A stretch of 64,000 nucleotides of DNA from Hyalangium minutum (GCF_000737315.1 NZ_JMCB01000004.1:124001-188000); one strand, 5' to 3'; shown: positions 431 through 12,535, numbered from the stretch's first letter. Numbers and translations are program-made. The notes: generated by a model not told the origin, from the letters alone.

Positions 431-3343
431 ATGACTTCCTCCCCCTCCGAGCAGGAACAGGCCCTCCTGGGCGAGATCGCTCGCCTTCGCGCACTGGAGG
501 ACGCCCTTCGCGTGGCCAACGAGCGCATCCAGCTGGCGCTGAACGCTGGAGCGGTGATTGGCACCTGGGTGTGGGACGTCCGAAGGGACCACTTCACGGC
601 CGATGAGCGCTTTGCCCGGTCCTTCTCAATCAATCCGGAACTGGCGGCGCAAGGCCTTCCGTTGAGCGTGGTCATCACCTCCATCCACCCGGAGGACCGT
701 CCTCGAATCGAAGCCCTGGTCGCCCGGACGGCGGAGATGGGGGGGCCCTATCGCGCCGAGTACCGGACACGCCAGCTCGATGGCTCCTACCTCTGGGTGG
801 AGGCCAATGGCCACTGCGAGCACGGACCCGACGGCAAGCCGGACCGTTTCCCGGGGGTGCTGATCAACATCGACGAGCGGAAGAAGGCGGAGCTGCGCCA
901 GGCCGCCCTCGTCGAGGTGGGCGACAAGCTTCGAGAGCTGGGCGACGCCGGCGAGGTGGCCCACGCCGCCATGGAGGTGGTCGGGCGGGTCATCGGCGTC
1001 ATCCGCGCCGGCTATGGCCGGGTCGACCCGGCCCTGCGAAAGGTGGAGATCGAGCAAGACTGGGTCAGTGCTCCCGGCGCGCTCAGCGTCCGGGGCGTGC
1101 ACGAGTTCACCCGGTACGGCACCTACATCGAGAACCTCGAGCGGGGCGAGGTGGTCAGCATCCGGGACATCGAGGTGGATTCCCGGACCATGGTGGGCGT
1201 GGAGAACCTGCGGCGGTTTGGCATCCGCGCGATGGTCAACGTGCCGTTGCTGGAGCAGGGGCGCCTGGTCGCGGTCCTGTTCCTTCATGACCGGGTGGTG
1301 CGCGACTGGTCTCCGGACGAGATCGAGTTCATGCGCAACGTGGCCGACCGCATCTGGGCAGCCAGCGAGCGCATCAAGGCCGTGGCGGAGCTGCGGCGGG
1401 CCAAAGAGACGCTCGAGCAGCGTGTCGCTCAGCGCACCCGCGAGCGCGATCGCCTCTGGAACGTCTCGCAGGATCTGCTGCTGGTGGCGGACTTCGAGGG
1501 CCGCTTCCTCAGCGTGAACCCCGCGTGGACCTTGGTGCTGGGCTGGACGGAAGCGGAGCTGTTGGGGAAGACCTCCCGCTGGCTGGAGCACCCGGAGGAC
1601 GGAGGAAAGACGCAGGCCGAGGTGGCGAGCCTGGCGGCGGGCTTCGCGACGCTGCGGTTCGAGAACACGTTCCGGCACAAGAACGGCACGTACCGCACCT
1701 TGTCCTGGACGGCGGTGCCGGTGCCGGAGGAGGGCGTGCTCTACGCCGTGGCGCGCGACATCACCGAGCAGCGCCAGACCGAGGATCAGCTGCGCCAGGC
1801 CCAGAAAATGGAGGCCATTGGCCAGCTGACGGGCGGCGTGGCGCACGACTTCAACAACCTGCTCCAGGTCGTCAGCGGCAACCTCCAGCTGCTCCAGCGG
1901 GACGTGGGCGGCAACCCGAACGCCCTGCGCCGCCTGCAGACGGCCGTCAGCGCCGTGGAGCGAGGCGCCAAGCTCGCGTCCCAGCTGCTCGCGTTCTCCC
2001 GCCGCCAGCCGCTCGAGCCACTGGTGCTCAACCTGGGCCGGCTGGTGCGCGGCATGGACGACATGCTGCGCCGCTCCCTGGGCGAGAACGTGGAGGTGGA
2101 GACGCTGGTCTCACCAGGGCTGTGGAACACCTCGGTGGATCCCAACCAGCTCGAGAACGTCATCCTCAACCTGGCCATCAACGCCCGGGATGCGATGGCG
2201 GGCACGGGCACGCTGACCATCGAAGTCAGCAACACCACGCTGGACGAGCGCTATGCCCAGCGTCACCCGGAGGTGGTGCCGGGGCCCTACGTGCTGCTGT
2301 CCGTCTCCGACACGGGCAGCGGCATGACTCCCGAGGTGCTCGAGCGGGCCTTCGAGCCCTTCTTCACCACCAAGCCCGAGGGCCGCGGCACCGGGCTGGG
2401 CCTGAGCATGGTGTATGGCTTCGTCCGGCAGAGCGGCGGCCACGTGACGATCCAGAGCGAGGTGGGGCGCGGCACGACGATTCAGATCTACCTGCCGCGC
2501 TCGTTCCAGGATGAGTCGGCGCCCGTGGAAGGCCTCACGGGCCCTGTCGAGGGCGGCACCGAGACGATCCTGGTGGTGGAGGATGACGCGCAGGTGCGGG
2601 CCACGGTGGTGGAGCTGCTGAGCGAGCTGGGCTACCAGGTGCTCAAGGCCGTGGATGGGCAGAGCGCGCTGGCGATCATCCAAAGCGGGGTGCCGGTGGA
2701 CCTGCTGTTCACGGATGTGGTGATGCCGGGGCCGGTGCGCAGCACGGAGCTGGCGCGGCTGGCCAAGGAGCTGGTGCCGCACATCGAGGTGCTCTTCACC
2801 TCGGGCTATGCGGAGGACGCCATCGTCCACGGGGGGCGGCTCGATCCCGGACTCCACCTGCTGAGCAAGCCCCACCGCCACGAGGACCTGGCGCGCAAGG
2901 TGCGGCAGCTGCTCAACCACCGGCAGCAGCGGCAGGCCCCCGAGTCCCCAGGTGCGAGGAAGACGCCCGTGCCCATTCCCTCTCTGCGGCTGCGCGTGCT
3001 GCTGGTGGAGGATGACGAGGAGATCCGCACGTCCACCCAGGAACTCCTGGACTTGCTCGGGCACGAGGTGGTGGCGGTGTCGAGCGCGGAGGCGGCGCGG
3101 GGCGCCTTGGCGGCGGGCGCCTTCGAGGTGCTCTTCACGGACGTGTCACTGCCGGGAGGCTCGGGCGCGGACCTGGCGCGTGAGGTGATGAAGCGCCATC
3201 CCGGGATGCGGGTCATCATCGCCTCGGGGGATGGGAGCGAGGCGATGAACGGGGAGCGCCCGGGCGTGGCCGTGCTGCTGCCCAAGCCCTACGCGCTGGC
3301 TCAGATTCAAGAGGCGCTCGCGCGAGTGGTGGCCTCTCGCTGA
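431..3343 (+). CDS. Hybrid sensor histidine kinase (PAS-GAF-PAS-HisKA-HATPase-REC-REC)
   Basis: H-box LTGGVAHDFNNLL, G boxes FFTTKPEGRGTGLGL, two receiver domains (ILVVEDD...LLFTDVVMPG; VLLVEDD...LFTDVSLPG). Start moved from 353 to the ATG at 431 (MTSSPSEQ). Confidence 0.92.
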   Translation: MTSSPSEQEQALLGEIARLRALEDALRVANERIQLALNAGAVIGTWVWDVRRDHFTADERFARSFSINPELAAQGLPLSVVITSIHPEDRPRIEALVARTAEMGGPYRAEYRTRQLDGSYLWVEANGHCEHGPDGKPDRFPGVLINIDERKKAELRQAALVEVGDKLRELGDAGEVAHAAMEVVGRVIGVIRAGYGRVDPALRKVEIEQDWVSAPGALSVRGVHEFTRYGTYIENLERGEVVSIRDIEVDSRTMVGVENLRRFGIRAMVNVPLLEQGRLVAVLFLHDRVVRDWSPDEIEFMRNVADRIWAASERIKAVAELRRAKETLEQRVAQRTRERDRLWNVSQDLLLVADFEGRFLSVNPAWTLVLGWTEAELLGKTSRWLEHPEDGGKTQAEVASLAAGFATLRFENTFRHKNGTYRTLSWTAVPVPEEGVLYAVARDITEQRQTEDQLRQAQKMEAIGQLTGGVAHDFNNLLQVVSGNLQLLQRDVGGNPNALRRLQTAVSAVERGAKLASQLLAFSRRQPLEPLVLNLGRLVRGMDDMLRRSLGENVEVETLVSPGLWNTSVDPNQLENVILNLAINARDAMAGTGTLTIEVSNTTLDERYAQRHPEVVPGPYVLLSVSDTGSGMTPEVLERAFEPFFTTKPEGRGTGLGLSMVYGFVRQSGGHVTIQSEVGRGTTIQIYLPRSFQDESAPVEGLTGPVEGGTETILVVEDDAQVRATVVELLSELGYQVLKAVDGQSALAIIQSGVPVDLLFTDVVMPGPVRSTELARLAKELVPHIEVLFTSGYAEDAIVHGGRLDPGLHLLSKPHRHEDLARKVRQLLNHRQQRQAPESPGARKTPVPIPSLRLRVLLVEDDEEIRTSTQELLDLLGHEVVAVSSAEAARGALAAGAFEVLFTDVSLPGGSGADLAREVMKRHPGMRVIIASGDGSEAMNGERPGVAVLLPKPYALAQIQEALARVVASR

Positions 3344-3352
3344 GCCGTGGCG

Positions 3353-4936
<1,584 letters not shown>

Positions 4937-5063: not shown

Positions 5064-5630
5064 TTAGAGCACCCGGCCGCGCAGCTCGGGGCTGGGGCGC
5101 TGGATGATCTCTGTGGTGAGCAGCAGGTGGGGTTCCACTGCCGCCGCCGCTCCTTCGAGCGCCGCCTCCACCATATGGAGCTCTCCGGCCAGGACGAAGA
5201 CGCCCTTGCCGCCGATGCCCCGCGCCAGCTGCAGCCGCTCCAGCACCACCTCGGCGCGCTTGAGCGCCGTGTCCGCGCACAGCAGCGCCGCGGCCACCGT
5301 GTGCGTCTCGACGATGCCCACGCTCTCTCCGAACGTGCCCGGGAAGCGGCCCTGGAGCCCGGCCACGAGCCCGTCCGCGGCCATGGGCAGCAGCAGCTTG
5401 TCCAGCAGCGTGCGGCCGGCCACCTCGAGCCCCTCCTGGAAGGACTCCTGCACCTCGGCCACGCCGCCGGAGAACAGCAGCAGGTACTTGCCCGGCGTCA
5501 CCGCCTCCGCCATTGCCAGTGTCACCGGTGCGCGCTTCACCACCGCGTCGGCCACGACGTAGCCGCGCGCGATGGAGTCCAGCTCCAGGAGCGCCAGCGC
5601 AGGGCCGGGAAGTGGCAGGGGATCAGACAA
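5064..5630 (-). CDS. BMC shell protein, tandem-domain BMC-T (PduT-like, single-layer type)
   Basis: Two BMC domains (LALLELDSIARGYVVADAVVKRA; VGIVETHTVAAALLCADTALKRA), terminal IIQRPSP. TTG start overlaps the ALDH stop. Confidence 0.9.
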   Translation of the reverse strand: MSDPLPLPGPALALLELDSIARGYVVADAVVKRAPVTLAMAEAVTPGKYLLLFSGGVAEVQESFQEGLEVAGRTLLDKLLLPMAADGLVAGLQGRFPGTFGESVGIVETHTVAAALLCADTALKRAEVVLERLQLARGIGGKGVFVLAGELHMVEAALEGAAAAVEPHLLLTTEIIQRPSPELRGRVL

Positions 5631-7149
5631 TGCGGAACGAGTCCTTGAGGGTGCAGCGCCGCTCGCGGGTGAAGCTCAGCGCGGTGGTGAGCCCCTCGCC
5701 CGTGGGGGAGGCGATGGTGAAGGAGGTGTAGCCCTCGCCCGTCATTCCCAGCCCGGCGAACGAGGGCCCGTTCTTCACGAAGATGGAAGTGTTGATGAGG
5801 CGCGCCATCGTGCTGAGGTGGTCCACGTTCGTGGAGTGCATGGTGGCCGTGTGCCCGAAGCCGTGCTCGGCCTGGACAGCGGCGGTGATGCAGTCCTCCA
5901 CGTTGCGCAGCCGCGTGAAGCCCATCACTGGCAGCAGCAGCTCCGCCTGGATGAACGGGTGGGTGGCGTCCACCTCGGCGAACAGCAGCCGCGTGCCCTG
6001 GGGCACCCGGATGCCCGCCGCGTCCGCGATCTTCTCCGCGTCCTTGCCCACCCAGTCCTTCACCGGGTGGCCGTCGTGGACTACCAGCTTCTCCAGCCGG
6101 TGGATGGCCGCGCCCGTCACCTCGTAGGCGCCGTAGCGCTCCATCTGCGCCTTGAGCTCGTCGGCGATGGAGGCCACCGCGAAGACTTCCTTCTCCACGA
6201 TGCAGACGATGTTGTTGTCCAGCGAGGCCCCGTCGACGATGTCCTTGGCCGCGCGGGCAATGTGAGCCGTCTCGTCCACCACGGCGGGCGGGTTGCCCGG
6301 GCCGGCGGCAATGGCCCGCTTGCCCGAGTTCATCGCCGCGCGCACCACCGCGGGCCCGCCCGTCACCACCAGCAGGCGCACGTTCTTGTGCTTCATCAGC
6401 GCCTGGGCCGAGTCGATCGTCGGCTCGGCCAGCGCGCACAGCAGGTTCTCCGGCCCGCCCGCGGAGACGATGGCCTCGTTGAGCAGCTGGATGTGGTACG
6501 CGCTCACCCGCTTGGCGCTCGGGTGCACGTTGAACACCACCGCGTTGCCCCCGGCGACCATGCCGATGCCGTTGTTGATGATCGTCTCGGTGGGGTTGGT
6601 GGTGGGGGTGATGGAGCCGATGACGCCGTAGGGCGCGCGCTCCAGCAGCGCCAGCCCGTGATCCCCGGTGAAGGCCACGGGCTTGAGGATCTCCGTGCCC
6701 GGCGTCTTGTTGGCGCACAGGAGGTTCTTCTTGATCTTGTCCTCCACGCGCCCCAGCCCCGTCTCTTTCACCGCCATCTCGGACAGCTCGCGGGCGGCGC
6801 GGCGGGTGGTCTCACGCATGGCCTCGATGGCGCGGTCCTTCACCTCGAGGGACAGCTCGCCCCACTCCTCGAAGGCAGCGCGGGCGGCGGTGGTGGCGGC
6901 GTCGAGGTCATCGAAGATGCCCTTGCGGCCCTTGTGGAAGGCGGGCGCGCGCGAGGGCACGGGAGGACGGGCCTCGGGGGTGAGGGGAGCGGTGCCATAG
7001 CGGCGCTCGCTGCCTCGCCGGTCATCCGCGTGGCCCTGAGGGGGCTGGGCGGGGGCGGGGACCGGCTGGGGGAGATCCGACAGCTCCTTGGAGAGCTTGC
7101 GGACCACCTGATCGACAATCGCGTCGATCTGCTTCGCGTCAAAGCTCAT
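5623..7149 (-). CDS. BMC-associated acylating aldehyde dehydrogenase (EutE/PduP family) with N-terminal encapsulation peptide
   Basis: ITPTTNPTET, VTGGPAVV, AGPGNPPAVVDETA, catalytic Cys in DNNIVCIVEK, EAELLLP-type motif. N-terminal amphipathic helix (KQIDAIVDQVVRKL) followed by a Pro-rich linker. Confidence 0.92.
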   Translation of the reverse strand: MSFDAKQIDAIVDQVVRKLSKELSDLPQPVPAPAQPPQGHADDRRGSERRYGTAPLTPEARPPVPSRAPAFHKGRKGIFDDLDAATTAARAAFEEWGELSLEVKDRAIEAMRETTRRAARELSEMAVKETGLGRVEDKIKKNLLCANKTPGTEILKPVAFTGDHGLALLERAPYGVIGSITPTTNPTETIINNGIGMVAGGNAVVFNVHPSAKRVSAYHIQLLNEAIVSAGGPENLLCALAEPTIDSAQALMKHKNVRLLVVTGGPAVVRAAMNSGKRAIAAGPGNPPAVVDETAHIARAAKDIVDGASLDNNIVCIVEKEVFAVASIADELKAQMERYGAYEVTGAAIHRLEKLVVHDGHPVKDWVGKDAEKIADAAGIRVPQGTRLLFAEVDATHPFIQAELLLPVMGFTRLRNVEDCITAAVQAEHGFGHTATMHSTNVDHLSTMARLINTSIFVKNGPSFAGLGMTGEGYTSFTIASPTGEGLTTALSFTRERRCTLKDSFRIV

Positions 7150-7190
7150 CGGCGAGGCTCCTGGCGGGGCAGGGCGCCCGCCGCTTCACT

Positions 7191-7379
7191 TCACGAGGCG
7201 CGTGGCAGGGGCGGCACCTGCTCGGAGCCCTCGTAGTAGATGCTGGCGGTCTCCTTGCCGTAGACAACGAGGACCCGATCGCTCTGGGCGAGCAGATCGC
7301 CCGTCGCCTCGGTGACCTTGCGAACCAGGGAGTCAGACTGCGCCGAGCGTTTGGAGGCTCGGACTTTGACGACCGGCAT
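7191..7379 (-). CDS. Small 4-oxalocrotonate tautomerase-like protein (Pro1, beta-alpha-beta)
   Basis: MPVVKVRASKRSAQSDSLVRKVTEATGDLLAQSDRVLVV...IYYEG matches the 4-OT pattern (P1, strand, R-S, helix LxRxVxEA, RVxV strand). AGGA ribosome site just upstream; co-oriented inside the operon. Confidence 0.62.
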   Translation of the reverse strand: MPVVKVRASKRSAQSDSLVRKVTEATGDLLAQSDRVLVVYGKETASIYYEGSEQVPPLPRAS

Positions 7380-7388
7380 GGGGGATTC

Positions 7389-7679
7389 CTACTCCTTGAC
7401 GTACTTCAGTGTGCCGCCCACTTCCAACTGATCGACGATGGCCATGACGGTCGCGTCGACGGGGCGGTCCTTCGTCACCTTCGTCTGCCGGGCGCTGGAG
7501 CCAGAGCAGTAGAGCACCACCTCGCCCACGCCGGCGCCCACCGCATCCACGGCGACGACGACGGGGCCGGTGACTTTGCCCTCCAAGTCCATGCCGCGCA
7601 GCACGAGGAGCTTCAAGCCCTCGAGCTCCTGCTCTTTGCGCGTGGCGACCACCGTCCCCACGACCTTGCCCATCAGCAT
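7389..7679 (-). CDS. BMC vertex pentamer, EutN/CcmL family (BMC-P)
   Basis: [15 protein letters not shown]...[15 protein letters not shown]...GSSAR...[11 protein letters not shown]. Confidence 0.95.
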
Positions 7680-7712
7680 GCGCGGCTCCCGGGTGACTTA
7701 GAGGGGGACAGG

Positions 7713-8015
7713 TCAGGTCGTCCCAGCGTCCGTCTTGCCCTTGCGGCCGAGCGGCAGGACCTGGTCCAGGTTGCCGTGGGGGCGGGGAATCACGTGCACG
7801 GAGACCAGCTCGCCCACGCGCTCGGCGCCACGGGCTCCGGCCTCGGTGGCCGCCTTCACTGCCGCCACGTCGCCGCGGATGATGGCCGTCACGTAGCCGC
7901 CGCCGATCTTCTCGTAGCCGACGAACTCCACCTTCGCCGCCTTCACCATCGCGTCGGCCGCTTCGACCATGCCGACGAAGCCCTTCGTTTCGATCAGCCC
8001 GAGTGCATCCGCCAT
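7713..8015 (-). CDS. BMC hexameric shell protein (BMC-H, PduA/EutM-like)
   Basis: [31 protein letters not shown] pore loop, VHVIPRPH. Confidence 0.96.
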
Positions 8016-8084
8016 CTGTTCGTTCCTCTCCGCTGCTGCGGTGAAATCACGTCACGCCGTCCCCGAGAGGGGCCGGCTGAAAAC

Positions 8085-8723
8085 TCACTTGTCCTTGAGA
8101 GACGCCGGCTCCTTGCCGGTGAGGCCCTTGAGCGCCGCCACCGCCGCCGCCGCCGCCGCGTCGATCTCCGCCTCGGAGCCGGCCATGTAGAGCCGGCCGA
8201 AGGCGCCGTACGGTGTCACATCCACCAGCTTCACGTTGGCCGCCTTCTCCGCCTCGTTGGCCGCCAGCGCCGCGTACGCCGCGGGCTCGCACTCGAGGAT
8301 GAAGAGGGACTCGCCGGGCTCAATCAGCGAGCCGAAGCGGATCTTGTCCAGGATCATCGCGTGCATCGGCTCGATGGCGCGGATGACGGTGTTGGAGACC
8401 AGCTTGGGCTTGATCCGGTCCTCTTCCTTGGCCTCCAGGAACTTGAGGATGGAGTCACCGGCGCTGCGCACCTCGCCCTTGTCCTCGTGGTGGACCTCGA
8501 GCATGCCGTAGGCGCGCTCGACCACCAGCGTGGCGGGGAACACCCGCGTGTTCTTGAGCGCGGTGTCGATGATCCCGTGGATGGCCATACCCGGCGCGAT
8601 CTCCACGAAGAGCGATGCCACGTAGGGCACCGGGAAATAGCCACGGCACGTGGTGCAGATGTGCGCGGCGAGCTGCGGCTGCAGCGAGTCGAGGAAAACG
8701 AACGCCCGGAGCGACGTGGCCAA
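8085..8723 (-). CDS. BMC-T shell protein, double-stacking (CcmP-like) type
   Basis: [47 protein letters not shown] start behind GGAGG. Confidence 0.9.
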
Positions 8724-8817
8724 AACAACCCTCCCGGTACTGCCGGTAGAGGGACCTTGCTATAGCGAACCGAACACTTCGTTGACAAGCGCCGTCTGGA
8801 GTGGCGGTAAAGGTCGC

Positions 8818-9423
8818 ATGTCCCCCCAATTGCTCTTGATTTCCCTTGTATTCGGGCTCTCCACGGTGGCGGCCGCGCAGCCGGAAGAGGCTCCCCCTGC
8901 CACCCGCCGCGTAGGGCAGACGCCCGTCTGGCTGCCCCGTGGCGCCTTCCTGGGCACCTTCATCCGGAAGGGGGCGGTGGTTCCCCAGGCCCGGCTCCAG
9001 TGGCAGTTGACGCTCTTCCAGCAGAAGAAGGACGGCATCGTGCTCTTGATGGAGGGCGGAGGCGGGTGGGCCGCGGGGCTGCCGGACACGGCCGTGGAGG
9101 GCTTCGACGCGCCCATCCACTCTCTGTATGAGCACACGCTCATGTTCGGAGTGGGCTACCGCAACCAGGACCCGGCGGGTTTGCACTGGGGGTTTCAGGT
9201 CACGGGAGGACCTGTCTGGTATGGTGCGCATTACCGGGATCTCCCGGTTGAGCATGACTCGGCGGGGTTGATGGAGGGGCGTATCCACGTGGGATACCGC
9301 TTCGGGCCGGTGGTTCTGGGAGTGAGCGGCGGGTACGCCGAGCCCTTCAGCTACACGCGGCGCAGCGTGGCGCGTCAGTTCCTCGGGGGAGCGCAGTTCG
9401 GGTTCTTCGCGGATTGGAGATAA
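8818..9423 (+). CDS. Exported hypothetical protein, possible outer-membrane beta-barrel
   Basis: Signal peptide (MSPQLLLISLVFGLSTVAAA), alternating amphipathic strands, aromatic-rich C-terminus (QFGFFADWR). Start set at ATG 8818. Confidence 0.6.
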   Translation: MSPQLLLISLVFGLSTVAAAQPEEAPPATRRVGQTPVWLPRGAFLGTFIRKGAVVPQARLQWQLTLFQQKKDGIVLLMEGGGGWAAGLPDTAVEGFDAPIHSLYEHTLMFGVGYRNQDPAGLHWGFQVTGGPVWYGAHYRDLPVEHDSAGLMEGRIHVGYRFGPVVLGVSGGYAEPFSYTRRSVARQFLGGAQFGFFADWR

Positions 9424-9509
9424 CCCTAGGCTCCTACCTGTCCTTGCCAGTCCTTCACAGGGCTGCGTAACGTGCGAAGTCATCCCCTCGGAGTCACGGG
9501 AGTGTCGCG

Positions 9510-10784
9510 GTGGCATTGACCACAGAAGCATTCGGTTTGACCGACGTTGGCCGGAAGCGTCAGCACAACGAAGATGCGATGTTGGTGGAGTCCCAGCTGG
9601 GGCTCTACATCGTCGCTGACGGCATGGGCGGTCACGCCGCGGGAGAGGTGGCCAGTGCGCGGGCGACCGAGGTCGTCAAGCAGCACATCACCGCGAACAA
9701 GCACCTGCTGAAGGATCTGGCCTCCAACCCGTCCCAGGACAGCCGGGCGGCGGCGGCGGCGCTGGTGGAAGTGGCCATCCAGCGGGCGTGCGCGGACATC
9801 TACAAGATGGCGCTGGCGGACGCGGCCAAGCGAGGCATGGGCACCACGTTCGTGTGCCTGGCGCTCAGCGGGAACAAGGGCGTCATTGGCCACGTGGGCG
9901 ACTCGCGCGTGTACCTGGTGCGCCACGGGCAGTGTCACCGGCTCACCGAGGACCACACGCTGGTGGCCGCACAGCTGAAGGCCGGCACCATCACCAAGGA
10001 GCAGGCGGCCAGCTCGCAGTACCGCAACGTGATTACCCGTGCGGTCGGCATCCAGGAGTCCGTGCAGGTGGACACCCTGATCGTCGACCTGATGCCGGGT
10101 GATGTCTTCATCCTCTGCTCGGACGGCCTGCACGGCTACATCGAGGACGAGGAGATGCTGCCGCTGGTCAGCACGGTGGCCATTGGCGATCTGCCCAAGA
10201 AGCTGATCGACACGGCCAACGAGCGCGGCGGCAAGGACAACATCACCGCCGTGGTGGTGAAGGTGGCTGGCGACGGCGCGGTGGCCAGCGAGGAGACGAG
10301 CGAGGCGCAGTCGCGCATGGAGGCGCTGCGGAAGATCCCGCTCTTCCGGCACCTCACGTACAAGGAGCAGACGGCGGTGCTGTCCATCGCCACCACGCGC
10401 ACGTTCCCCGCGGGGCGGGAGATTGTGGTGGAGGGCCAGCCGGGCGAGGAGCTGTTCGTCGTCATCCGCGGCCGGGTGGTGATTGAGAAGAACGGCGTGG
10501 AGATCGCCGAGCTGCGCGCCGGTGGGCACTTCGGAGAGATGGGGCTCATCGACAACGCGCCGCGCTCGGCGACGGTGCGCGCCACCGAGCCCACGCGAAC
10601 GATGGTCATCTCCCGGCCGGACCTGATGAGCCTGATGAAGCGCGAGTCCATCCTCGCGGTGAAGATGCTCTGGAGCTTCGTGCAGGTGCTGTCGGACCGG
10701 CTGCGCGCGACGAACTCGGAGCTGAGCGAGGCGCGCCAGGAACTGGCGGTGGCGCAGTCCGTCCAGCCCTTCGCCGAGGAGTAG
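9510..10784 (+). CDS. PP2C-family Ser/Thr phosphatase with C-terminal cyclic-nucleotide-binding domain
   Basis: GRKRQHNED, VADGMGGH, MGTT, GHVGDSR, LCSDGL, GGKDNIT; cNMP cassette FGEMGLIDNAPRSATVRA. Confidence 0.93.
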   Translation: MALTTEAFGLTDVGRKRQHNEDAMLVESQLGLYIVADGMGGHAAGEVASARATEVVKQHITANKHLLKDLASNPSQDSRAAAAALVEVAIQRACADIYKMALADAAKRGMGTTFVCLALSGNKGVIGHVGDSRVYLVRHGQCHRLTEDHTLVAAQLKAGTITKEQAASSQYRNVITRAVGIQESVQVDTLIVDLMPGDVFILCSDGLHGYIEDEEMLPLVSTVAIGDLPKKLIDTANERGGKDNITAVVVKVAGDGAVASEETSEAQSRMEALRKIPLFRHLTYKEQTAVLSIATTRTFPAGREIVVEGQPGEELFVVIRGRVVIEKNGVEIAELRAGGHFGEMGLIDNAPRSATVRATEPTRTMVISRPDLMSLMKRESILAVKMLWSFVQVLSDRLRATNSELSEARQELAVAQSVQPFAEE

Positions 10785-10838
10785 GGTCCCCGGCGCCCCG
10801 GTGCCGCCCAAGGGCCGCGCACCGGGGCAGGCTGTGGG

Positions 10839-11603
10839 TCAGCGGAGGGAGTCCGTCACCTCGTAGGTGAGGGTCTGGAAGGAAGCCTCTCGGTACACCT
10901 GGAGCTGCACCGTGCCGCCGGGTGTGGACAGCCGATCGGCCAGGGCTCCCAGTTGGTCAGGGGAGAGCGGCGCTCCATTCATGCGGAACAGCACATCTCC
11001 CTCGTGGAGGCCGAGCCGCGCGAAGACTCCGTTCTCCTGAACGTCGGTGAGCTGGATGGCGGGCTGTGGAAACACCCTCAGGGTCTCCGCATGCGCGCCC
11101 AGGCCGTATTTGCCGCGGAGCTGCGACACCACGCTGCTTTTCACCTTCCAACGGAGCCGGCCCTCGTGGACGGCGGCCGTGTCGAAGCGGTGGCGGATGA
11201 CGCGCAGGGACACGTCCCGGCCCACCGGGAGCAGCTGGGAGCCCTCGGGCCCCGTGAGCTGGAGCCCTGCGGAGGTGATGGCCGTCACCCGGAGATTGCG
11301 GCCCAGCAGCTCTCCCACGTGCAGGTTGCGCGTCTCCCAGGTCTCCGTGTCCGCCAGCGTCGCGAAGGACTCGGTTCGAACGGGGCTGAGCTGGACTCCG
11401 AAGAGGCGATAGCGGGCGGTGCGCGCCTCATACGCCGCCGCCGCGTCGCCCAGCTCCGGTGCCAGCAGGTCCGCGAGCTCCGCCTCACCCACCTCCGTGC
11501 GCGGTGCCTCCCCAGTGTTTCCCTCCGGCGGCTGCGCTTCATTGGAGCAACCGGCGAGCGTCACCACAACCATTCCCCACAGCAACACAGACATGCTCTT
11601 CAT
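10839..11603 (-). CDS. Lipoprotein with C-terminal PDZ-like domain
   Basis: Lipobox LAGC after MKSMS start (11603); C-terminal FARLGLHEGDVLFRMNG is PDZ-like. Confidence 0.7.
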   Translation of the reverse strand: MKSMSVLLWGMVVVTLAGCSNEAQPPEGNTGEAPRTEVGEAELADLLAPELGDAAAAYEARTARYRLFGVQLSPVRTESFATLADTETWETRNLHVGELLGRNLRVTAITSAGLQLTGPEGSQLLPVGRDVSLRVIRHRFDTAAVHEGRLRWKVKSSVVSQLRGKYGLGAHAETLRVFPQPAIQLTDVQENGVFARLGLHEGDVLFRMNGAPLSPDQLGALADRLSTPGGTVQLQVYREASFQTLTYEVTDSLR

Positions 11604-11629
11604 GGTGGTTCCCCCTGGAAGGACGGCCG

Positions 11630-12535
11630 TTACTGGAAGCACTCCCCGACAACGCCCGCGCCATCCGGGTTGGTGGCCCAGGCTGCGCACGCCAGCTTTC
11701 GCTGCGCCGACACGCTGGGGTGGAAGCAGTCGGTGCCGTTGAGGTCCGACGCGCGGAAGACGTACGTGCCCACCGAAGTGTTCTGGAAGCCCTCCTCGAG
11801 GGAGCCCTGCCAGTCCGCCACGAAGCGCACGCCTCGCGGGTTGCGGCCGTCGATGTTGGCTGCGTAGAGATCGACCTCGGCACGGGTCGCCGCGTTGTAT
11901 TCATTGATGCGAGCGCCGATCTGCGCTCGCCGGCCGCCGTTCCTCTCTGCGGTGACGATGCGGCAGATGCCTGCGGCGGGCCAGATGACGTACGAGCAAT
12001 ACAGGCTCTTGGCATTCCCAGCGGCGTAGAGGAAATCCACCCGAGGGAAGCTCAGCACGTGTACCGTCGCGCCCGGCGAGAGGCAGGCCGCCAGCTGATC
12101 CAGCCCCGCGCGCAGCGCGTTGACCCAGGTGTCGAGCGAGTACATGTTCGCGGTGGCATCCGAGCTGGAGGATCTCGGCCGGTTGCACACGTCGTTGGCG
12201 CCGAGGAGGACAGAGACGTGCTGGGGCTTCTCCTCCTGCGCGCAGATCCGCGATGCCTGGACGGCGAAGTTGTTGCTCCCGCCGACCATCTCCGCGCCCG
12301 AGACGGACTCGGGTTGCTGGGTGAAGGAAGGGACGAGCTCCCGATACCGCATGAAGATCGAGAAGACGCTGCTGGAGGTGCCTTGCACCCAGCTCAGCTC
12401 CGGGCGATCCGCGGGCCACCCATCCGCGATCGCGCCTTGGGACATGCTGTCACCCACGTTGGACTGCTTGGTGGGGAGCTCGGCCCATGCCACACCTGCC
12501 AGGAGCCCCGCTGCCACTGCGCAGAGAATCCGCAT
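11630..12535 (-). CDS. Secreted SGNH/GDSL-family hydrolase
   Basis: Signal peptide, block I VGDSMSQG, block III LLGANDVC, block V DCFHPS. Start at ATG 12535 or GTG near 12550. Confidence 0.85.
   Translation of the reverse strand: MRILCAVAAGLLAGVAWAELPTKQSNVGDSMSQGAIADGWPADRPELSWVQGTSSSVFSIFMRYRELVPSFTQQPESVSGAEMVGGSNNFAVQASRICAQEEKPQHVSVLLGANDVCNRPRSSSSDATANMYSLDTWVNALRAGLDQLAACLSPGATVHVLSFPRVDFLYAAGNAKSLYCSYVIWPAAGICRIVTAERNGGRRAQIGARINEYNAATRAEVDLYAANIDGRNPRGVRFVADWQGSLEEGFQNTSVGTYVFRASDLNGTDCFHPSVSAQRKLACAAWATNPDGAGVVGECFQ

Follow-up and report, generated by a model that had tools for sequence, protein, structure and literature searches.

A conserved tautomerase-like microprotein gene in the Hyalangium minutum HO-type microcompartment operon is kept by relatives that lack the organelle genes

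Structural and engineering work on bacterial microcompartments (BMCs) takes the HO shell, whose native function is enigmatic, as its main model. The HO-type operon of Hyalangium minutum analyzed here lies in a 64,000-nucleotide stretch of DNA (NZ_JMCB01000004.1, bp 124001–188000; "the window", from whose first nucleotide all positions are counted), and between its BMC-P and aldehyde dehydrogenase (AldDh) genes there is a 62-codon open reading frame whose product starts with Met-Pro and resembles the 4-oxalocrotonate tautomerases (4-OT). A previous interpretation of this DNA (the sequence-only reading) saw in this microprotein a candidate for the missing signature enzyme of the compartment, one that would generate or isomerize the aldehyde for AldDh. 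Is the reading frame a gene, is its product a tautomerase, and could it be the signature enzyme?

The operon (Table 1) has the order of an HO-type main locus, BMC-Tdp, BMC-H, BMC-P, the small gene, AldDh and BMC-Ts, and all members of the HO-type gene set are present, namely BMC-H, BMC-P, a tandem-domain BMC-T, a PduT-like BMC-T and an AldDh with an N-terminal extension. Residues 1–25 of AldDh form an amphipathic helix that is followed by a Pro-rich linker, and the Aldedh domain begins near residue 80. The BMC catalog (PMC8217296) lists the orthologous Hyalangium locus, DB31_6364–DB31_6369, as "HO (main)", and the numbering of this locus leaves space for exactly one extra gene, the small gene. 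The statement in the sequence-only reading that the HO-type locus has no signature gene and no known substrate agrees with this catalog, which gives only shell proteins and AldDh and regards the function as enigmatic. No further shell genes are present across the 64 kb window; it contains only one BMC-P gene, and the remaining two of the HO "triplet" must be elsewhere. A promoter and terminator scan of the operon gave nothing informative.

Table 1. Features of the HO-type operon and its flanks in the window
Feature	Position (bp)	Strand	Remarks
PAS histidine kinase gene	3353–4936	−	Downstream of the operon; directly follows the orphan microprotein gene in Stigmatella
BMC-T, PduT-like, 188 aa	5064–5630	−	Overlaps the AldDh stop by 8 nt
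Aldehyde dehydrogenase (AldDh), 508 aa	5623–7149	−	PF00171; 41 nt downstream of the microprotein gene
Microprotein gene, 62 aa	7191–7379	−	Diverged 4-OT-like, predicted beta-alpha-beta; family core DRVLVVYGxxxAxIYYE
BMC-P (EutN/CcmL pentamer)	7389–7679	−	PF03319, E 5e-29; directly upstream of the microprotein gene
AAGGAG ribosome-binding site of the microprotein gene	7392–7397	−	Last two (Lys-Glu) codons of BMC-P; 12 nt before the ATG
BMC-H shell hexamer	7713–8015	−	Pfam match
BMC-T, tandem-domain, CsoS1D-like, 212 aa	8085–8723	−	First gene of the operon
Signal-peptide protein, 201 aa	8818–9423	+	No Pfam match; divergent from the operon
PP2C phosphatase with cNMP-binding domain	9510–10784	+	Syntenic anchor in BMC-bearing and BMC-less genomes

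The length of the small reading frame is by itself no evidence for a gene, since at the 68% G+C of this sequence a stretch of 20 kb contains 119 ORFs of 50 aa or more. It was correctly placed between BMC-P and AldDh by the sequence-only reading, which gave no strand; it is on the minus strand and its 62 codons translate as MPVVKVRASKRSAQSDSLVRKVTEATGDLLAQSDRVLVVYGKETASIYYEGSEQVPPLPRAS. A chance ORF or an untranslated spacer in high-G+C intergenic DNA would draw on the fact that random ORFs of such size are very common in DNA of this composition, but it must contend with a coding-like GC3 (0.85, similar to that of the neighboring genes), with an ORF, start site and motif that are kept across more than 100 sequences from several genera, and with a dN/dS below 0.5 (median pairwise values of 0.48 among copies within BMC operons and 0.39 among the "orphan" copies discussed below). 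This conservation already refutes a chance ORF, whose probability is next to nil. Because of the coding-like GC3, the many homologs, the conserved position in dozens of loci and the low dN/dS, the ORF is a real gene, and it is restricted to the Myxococcaceae/Archangiaceae.

A word-indexed search returned 45 clusters of close homologs (65–95% identity) from Hyalangium, Stigmatella and Myxococcaceae MAGs, and an exhaustive HMMER profile search of 1.84 billion representatives returned 59 clusters at 50% identity; overall there are more than 100 homologs, all of them from the Myxococcaceae/Archangiaceae. Loci were also collected with a degenerate DNA pattern of the core motif, which found 66 genome and 39 metagenome loci, essentially all from the same two families. 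This pattern was made by hand, was tested on the window first and biases the loci toward intact RVLVVY...IYYE motifs; statements about family-wide conservation rest on the unbiased HMMER search instead. One cyanobacterial locus (L057) was dropped as a chance DNA match without protein similarity. A sequence recorded as "Comamonas sp. KCTC 72670" (BNCN01000007.1) carries a Myxococcus-type small gene and a PP2C gene whose product is 88% identical to that of the window, and its organism name looks wrong. Homologs of the microprotein are annotated as hypothetical by NCBI, many are "phenylpyruvate tautomerase PptA (4-OT family)" in IMG, and one UniRef entry is called "4-oxalocrotonate tautomerase domain-containing"; the 4-OT resemblance has thus already been caught by automatic pipelines. 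Among open-access papers, none was found that discusses the small gene.

The ATG of the small gene lies 9 nt from the BMC-P stop codon, and the expectation that it has its own ribosome site is borne out by an AAGGAG within the end of the BMC-P gene. This AAGGAG-stop-ATG junction is kept in nearly all of about 18 related loci that were compared. BMC-P ends in ...Y-V-K-E-stop in almost all of them (bp 7389–7397 in the window, and the equivalent positions elsewhere). Since the terminal AAGGAG codons of BMC-P double as the ribosome site, both the C-terminus of BMC-P and the start of the small gene are constrained. Farther downstream, the 8-nt overlap between the AldDh stop and the start of the PduT-like BMC-T gene (bp 5623–5630) suggests translational coupling at that junction too.

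The motifs that had been pointed out as tautomerase-like (P1, R10-S, LVRKVTEA and R35-V-L-V) are all found in the protein. AlphaFold2 models built from two alignments (pLDDT 74 and 77) have a strand at residues 3–7, a helix at 15–32 and strands at 36–40 and 44–49, a predicted beta-alpha-beta-beta layout that matches 4-OT. Among solved structures the YwhB tautomerase gives the best sequence match (residues 4–49 without gaps, E 0.15), and 4-OT chains recur among the profile matches. The window protein matches NCBIfam TIGR00013 over residues 1–44 at E 0.0096 (16 bits; the cut-off is 56.9) and the DmpI model at 13.4 bits (cut-off 70), and it reaches none of the curated cut-offs of PF01361, TIGR00013 and NF041920. 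Among 56 diverse family members, 12 match DmpI (best E 1.2e-5), eight match TIGR00013 and three match NF002524 (best E 1.1e-5); the best member on PF01361, P0215, scores 21.5 bits where the cut-off is 22. With hhalign the microprotein family aligns to a 4-OT alignment along the helix and strand 2, at 67% probability (P 5e-5). On the other side of the ledger, a search of the window protein against PF01361, which had been put forward as a check, gave no match even at E ≤ 10, and two Foldseek searches of the AlphaFold models against the PDB placed no tautomerase among the best 50 matches (best E 0.3–0.4). The Foldseek matches, to small alpha/beta domains such as the DAHP synthase N-domain, ribosomal proteins and MinE, are insignificant and were not used, and the sole Pfam match of the window protein, to Ketoacyl-synt_2 (E 0.004, below cut-off), was judged spurious. 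Thus, of the 4-OT pattern first described, a weak but repeated in-register resemblance to 4-OT models stands, and recognition by PF01361 or by Foldseek does not. It is probable, if unproven, that the microprotein is a distant and highly diverged descendant of the 4-OT (beta-alpha-beta) fold.

P0215 is the family member closest to true tautomerases. Its gene is followed, after 210 nt, by a different Aldedh-family gene (L073, bp 138–943), on a 944-nt contig that has no BMC-P gene, and it may be a link from this family to the classical tautomerase/ALDH gene pairs.

In the tautomerase superfamily catalysis depends on Pro1, and the window protein indeed starts Met-Pro-Val-Val, its start being fixed by the conserved junction. 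In the close clade (alignment A1) 28 of 29 sequences start Met-Pro and the 29th has no N-terminus. Across the wider family, Met is often followed by T, A, G, S, K or L. Among 37 distinct copies that lie between BMC-P and AldDh genes, 26 have Pro, and in the other 11 this position is occupied by T, K, A, G or V; the starts without Pro include MTVVT (L025, L032 and L075), MTIVT (L030), MAVMK (L070), MGVVT (L074), MKVIK (L072, L078 and L093) and MKKLK (L067). These start sites are secure at the DNA level, where an ATG or GTG lies 8–14 nt after the BMC-P stop and an AAGGAG is present as in the window; in L067 the start overlaps the BMC-P stop as ATGA. Conservation of Pro1 in orthologous BMC loci, on which the idea of a Pro1 enzyme leaned, therefore breaks down in 11 of 37 distinct operon copies with secure starts. 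In the orphans, about 95% have Pro at position 2. Most of the replacements (T, A, G and V) would leave a free N-terminal amine after removal of Met, and the 4-OT mutants P1A and P1G keep reduced activity.

The invariant part of the family lies elsewhere, in the core D-R-V-L-V-V-Y-x4-A-x-I-Y-Y-E. Its segment RVLVVY-x4-A-x-IYYE is a beta-hairpin, hydrophobic on either face, a feature that suggests an interface, whether within an obligate oligomer or with a binding partner. R35, just before strand 2, is nearly invariant, and hhalign places it two residues from Arg39 of 4-OT, whose equivalent it could be. The region equivalent to Arg11 is basic in this family, but no single Arg is conserved there. 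A C-terminal LPRAS (residues 58–62) or R-x-S is common to Hyalangium operon copies and the orphans of Archangium and Cystobacter; the tail before the terminal LPRAS is variable, and Stigmatella has SGSHVS instead.

How closely does the small gene follow the HO operon? In a differently located HO-like locus, L067, a divergent homolog (E 1e-7 to the family profile) lies between BMC-P and AldDh; this site has no PP2C gene, and the small gene there travels with the BMC operon. In the related HO-like loci L068 and L069, the gap between BMC-P and AldDh is 76 bp and no homolog of the small gene was found within 8 kb. Co-occurrence with HO-type loci, which the sequence-only reading had made a point of inquiry, is therefore a mixed matter: the place of the gene is fixed in all operon copies, but it is absent from L068 and L069 and present in genera without a BMC. 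The degenerate pattern gave no match in Haliangium, and it would also miss divergent forms such as that of L067. Only a single tag, Hoch_5813, separates Hoch_5812 from Hoch_5814, which we take to be the BMC-P gene, and thus no annotated small gene is expected there; Hoch_5812 and Hoch_5816 are each known from the literature to be BMC-T genes. Two further features of other loci deserve mention. In L067 (bp 9437–10115 and 10732–11814) AldDh is followed by two unannotated genes (100 and 127 aa, no Pfam match) and an aminotransferase gene, none of which has a counterpart in the window. In the metagenomic HO locus L105 (bp 2361–3945) AldDh aligns in three pieces in different frames, which points to frameshifts, due either to a pseudogene or to assembly errors.

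The small gene occurs in two classes of context. The operon copies lie inside a full operon, beside the divergent 201-aa secreted protein gene and the PP2C-cNMP phosphatase gene. The orphans, from Myxococcus, Corallococcus, Pyxidicoccus, Citreicoccus, Archangium, Cystobacter, Vitiosangium and one uncultured clade, lie at the same PP2C-anchored site, and no shell or AldDh gene is present within the DNA examined around them. Shell-protein trees of the BMC catalog do not contain Myxococcus, Corallococcus or Cystobacter, and Myxococcus xanthus has an orphan copy only. The clearest case is Stigmatella erecta, in which the order is PP2C, small gene and PAS histidine kinase (L115, bp 6424–9966) and the encoded protein is 83% identical to that of the window over 85% of its length; here the three upstream shell genes and the downstream AldDh and BMC-T genes are gone, and the 190-bp gene that they once flanked is still there. 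A neighbor-joining tree built from the PP2C proteins has the BMC-bearing loci branching at its base as a paraphyletic set, with the orphans in at least two derived clades. These two clades and Stigmatella together imply at least three independent losses of the organelle that spared the small gene. Insertion of BMC genes around a pre-existing small gene was rejected, as it needs two insertions, and it is also countered by L067, where the small gene is in a BMC operon at another site, and by the basal position of the BMC-bearing loci in the PP2C tree.

Homologs of the 201-aa protein are a conserved neighbor of both BMC operons and orphan microprotein genes. They are also found, again divergent, beside the differently located HO-like loci L067–L069, as well as with the orphans of Myxococcus, Archangium and others. 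This protein may be an unrecognized accessory of HO loci, such as one of the cell envelope. The secreted-protein and PP2C genes of Myxococcus have an FHA-domain gene between them.

Could the microprotein nevertheless be the HO signature enzyme, a Pro1-dependent member of the tautomerase superfamily (a tautomerase, isomerase, dehalogenase or decarboxylase) that makes or isomerizes the aldehyde for AldDh? Its Met-Pro start in the window protein and close clade, the Pro kept by nearly all orphans, the weak in-register matches to 4-OT models and the gene's position directly upstream of AldDh all speak in favor of this, as do the similar position of the P0215 gene just upstream of an Aldedh-family gene, the N-terminal amine that most Pro substitutes would still expose, the possibility that R35 is the Arg39 equivalent, and the lack of an assigned native HO function. 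However, 30% of the distinct operon-embedded orthologs have no Pro1, the Arg11-equivalent position is not conserved and no curated family cut-off is reached. Nor does the gene behave as one that defines a compartment type, since it is not in all loci of the type (L068 and L069 have none), is not confined to compartment-bearing genomes and is kept where AldDh and shell have both been lost. An architecture of encapsulation peptide plus linker is not evident; the only predicted helix (residues 15–32) is internal and would pack on the sheet, and the C-terminal tail is Pro-rich and non-helical. Moreover, other sources of the HO aldehyde have already been proposed, namely class II (pfam00596) and DeoC-type (pfam01791) aldolases, with encapsulation-peptide-like extensions, in satellite or distant loci (PMC8217296). 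The identification of the microprotein as the missing signature enzyme thus founders on the loss of Pro1, on L068 and L069 and on its retention in BMC-less genera, and it appears unlikely.

The explanation that fits best, to which we give about an even chance, is that the microprotein is an oligomer with an accessory or regulatory role, that this role is non-catalytic or at any rate independent of Pro1 and is played both in the cytoplasm and next to the compartment, and that the microprotein is not the signature enzyme. The small gene would belong to the ancestral HO operon of this lineage, set between BMC-P and AldDh, and the microprotein would be translated from the ribosome site within the BMC-P end, its expression being coupled to that of BMC-P. 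It would form a small oligomer with an accessory or regulatory function that can also operate in the cytoplasm, and selection would maintain that function with need of neither Pro1, shell nor AldDh; an aldehyde-generating signature enzyme does not fit such a function. The data show that the gene is real, where it lies in the operon, how it is distributed, that Pro1 has been lost and that orphans are retained, whereas fold homology, oligomerization and a non-catalytic role are inferred. A point against this explanation is that all operon copies keep the gene tightly coupled to BMC-P and AldDh, which speaks for some function connected with the compartment. The fallback offered in the sequence-only reading, a non-catalytic shell accessory, fares better than its main proposal: a non-catalytic accessory fits the data, and it is the strictly shell-bound role that is weakened by the orphans. 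Those members that retain Pro (the window protein, its close clade and about 95% of the orphans) may still be catalytic.

A more specific role in the compartment would be that of a structural adaptor, with helix 15–32 acting like an encapsulation peptide or with the protein bridging BMC-P or the shell to the AldDh cargo during assembly. This accords with the invariant position between BMC-P and AldDh and the translational-coupling-like junction in all operon copies and L067, with the dispensability of Pro1 and with the conserved hydrophobic hairpin, which suggests a binding surface. But the orphans, in genomes that have no shell genes, show the same constraint, L068 and L069 have the same gene set without the small gene, and in the models the helix, which is equally conserved in the orphans, lies against the sheet in the manner of a beta-alpha-beta unit. 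We consider a compartment-specific adaptor somewhat less likely even than the signature enzyme.

The orphans might instead suggest that the small gene belongs with its other neighbors, as a small regulatory protein tied to the FHA, PP2C-cNMP phosphatase and PAS histidine kinase genes with which the BMC genes happen to share a transcription unit. Wherever the BMC genes have been lost from the PP2C-anchored site, the small gene alone is always left beside the PP2C operon, and its neighbors in Stigmatella are PP2C on one side and the PAS kinase on the other. Against this, in L067 it travels with the BMC operon at a site without PP2C, no DNA-binding or signalling domain was detected in the microprotein, and synteny alone is weak evidence; this explanation is improbable, the more so than the adaptor.

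Two broader readings of the family may be set beside the accessory protein that we prefer. One is that a 4-OT-fold protein was made non-enzymatic and arose as a fixed part of the HO operon, coupled to the BMC-P vertex protein and AldDh, and that it proved useful enough alone for at least three lineages to delete the organelle and keep the protein; the other is that the catalytic activity of the microprotein would reveal which substrate the HO compartment uses. Even when these two are counted together, their probability is rather low, comparable to that of the adaptor.

A conserved and overlooked sixth gene at a fixed place in many HO loci is relevant to any reconstitution of the native organelle, and the search for the HO signature enzyme is redirected, as the small gene is probably not it. 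For specialists in microcompartments and in tautomerases alike, the interest of the microprotein lies in what is probably a strongly diverged form of a known fold, a tautomerase-like scaffold with its hallmark proline repeatedly lost, that is conserved, has been overlooked and outlives its organelle. Its survival after organelle loss also offers a genetically tractable entry, since Myxococcus xanthus has the orphan only.

Comparison with known systems places the microprotein as follows. The Hyalangium operon matches the HO type I main locus (Sutter et al. 2021, PMC8217296) in its BMC-T, BMC-H, BMC-P, AldDh with N-terminal encapsulation peptide and PduT-like BMC-T genes and in their order. It differs in that the catalog text, which has shell proteins and AldDh only, does not mention the small gene, and in that only one BMC-P of the HO triplet lies within this window. 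The sequence-only reading knew of no BMC type with a tautomerase, but this is wrong, since some ARO loci of Actinobacteria encode a 2-hydroxymuconate tautomerase as part of a catechol pathway (PMC10470539). Those loci resemble the present one in having a tautomerase-superfamily gene together with BMC shell genes and an aldehyde dehydrogenase; unlike them, the Hyalangium locus has no pathway genes, and the microprotein is far more diverged and is also found in BMC-less genomes. About 3% of the tautomerase superfamily lack Pro-1 (PMC5818174), and these proteins are likewise tautomerase-like, with Ser, Ile, Ala or another residue after Met, and of unknown function. In the microprotein family, by contrast, the loss is ten times more frequent, it occurs within one small family, and it has happened repeatedly among otherwise orthologous operon copies.

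With the 4-OT family itself (DmpI/XylH and YwhB; PF01361, TIGR00013) the microprotein shares a length of about 60 residues, the Met-Pro start, a predicted strand-helix-strand-strand at nearly equal positions, the helix motif L-V/I-R-x-V-T/S-E-A and an Arg just ahead of strand 2. On the other hand, it is without two residues in the loop between strand 1 and the helix, its loop between the helix and strand 2 is shorter, and its own invariant RVLVVY-x4-A-x-IYYE is absent from 4-OT; in addition, Pro1 is replaced in about 30% of the operon-embedded microproteins and the Arg11 position is not conserved in the family. Another kind of microcompartment operon, that of alpha-carboxysomes, offers a precedent in acRAF, a small pterin-4a-carbinolamine dehydratase-like protein with an enzyme fold that has lost catalytic residues, works with RuBisCO and serves as an assembly factor. 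The fold of acRAF is unrelated to that of the microprotein and its cargo, RuBisCO, is a different one.
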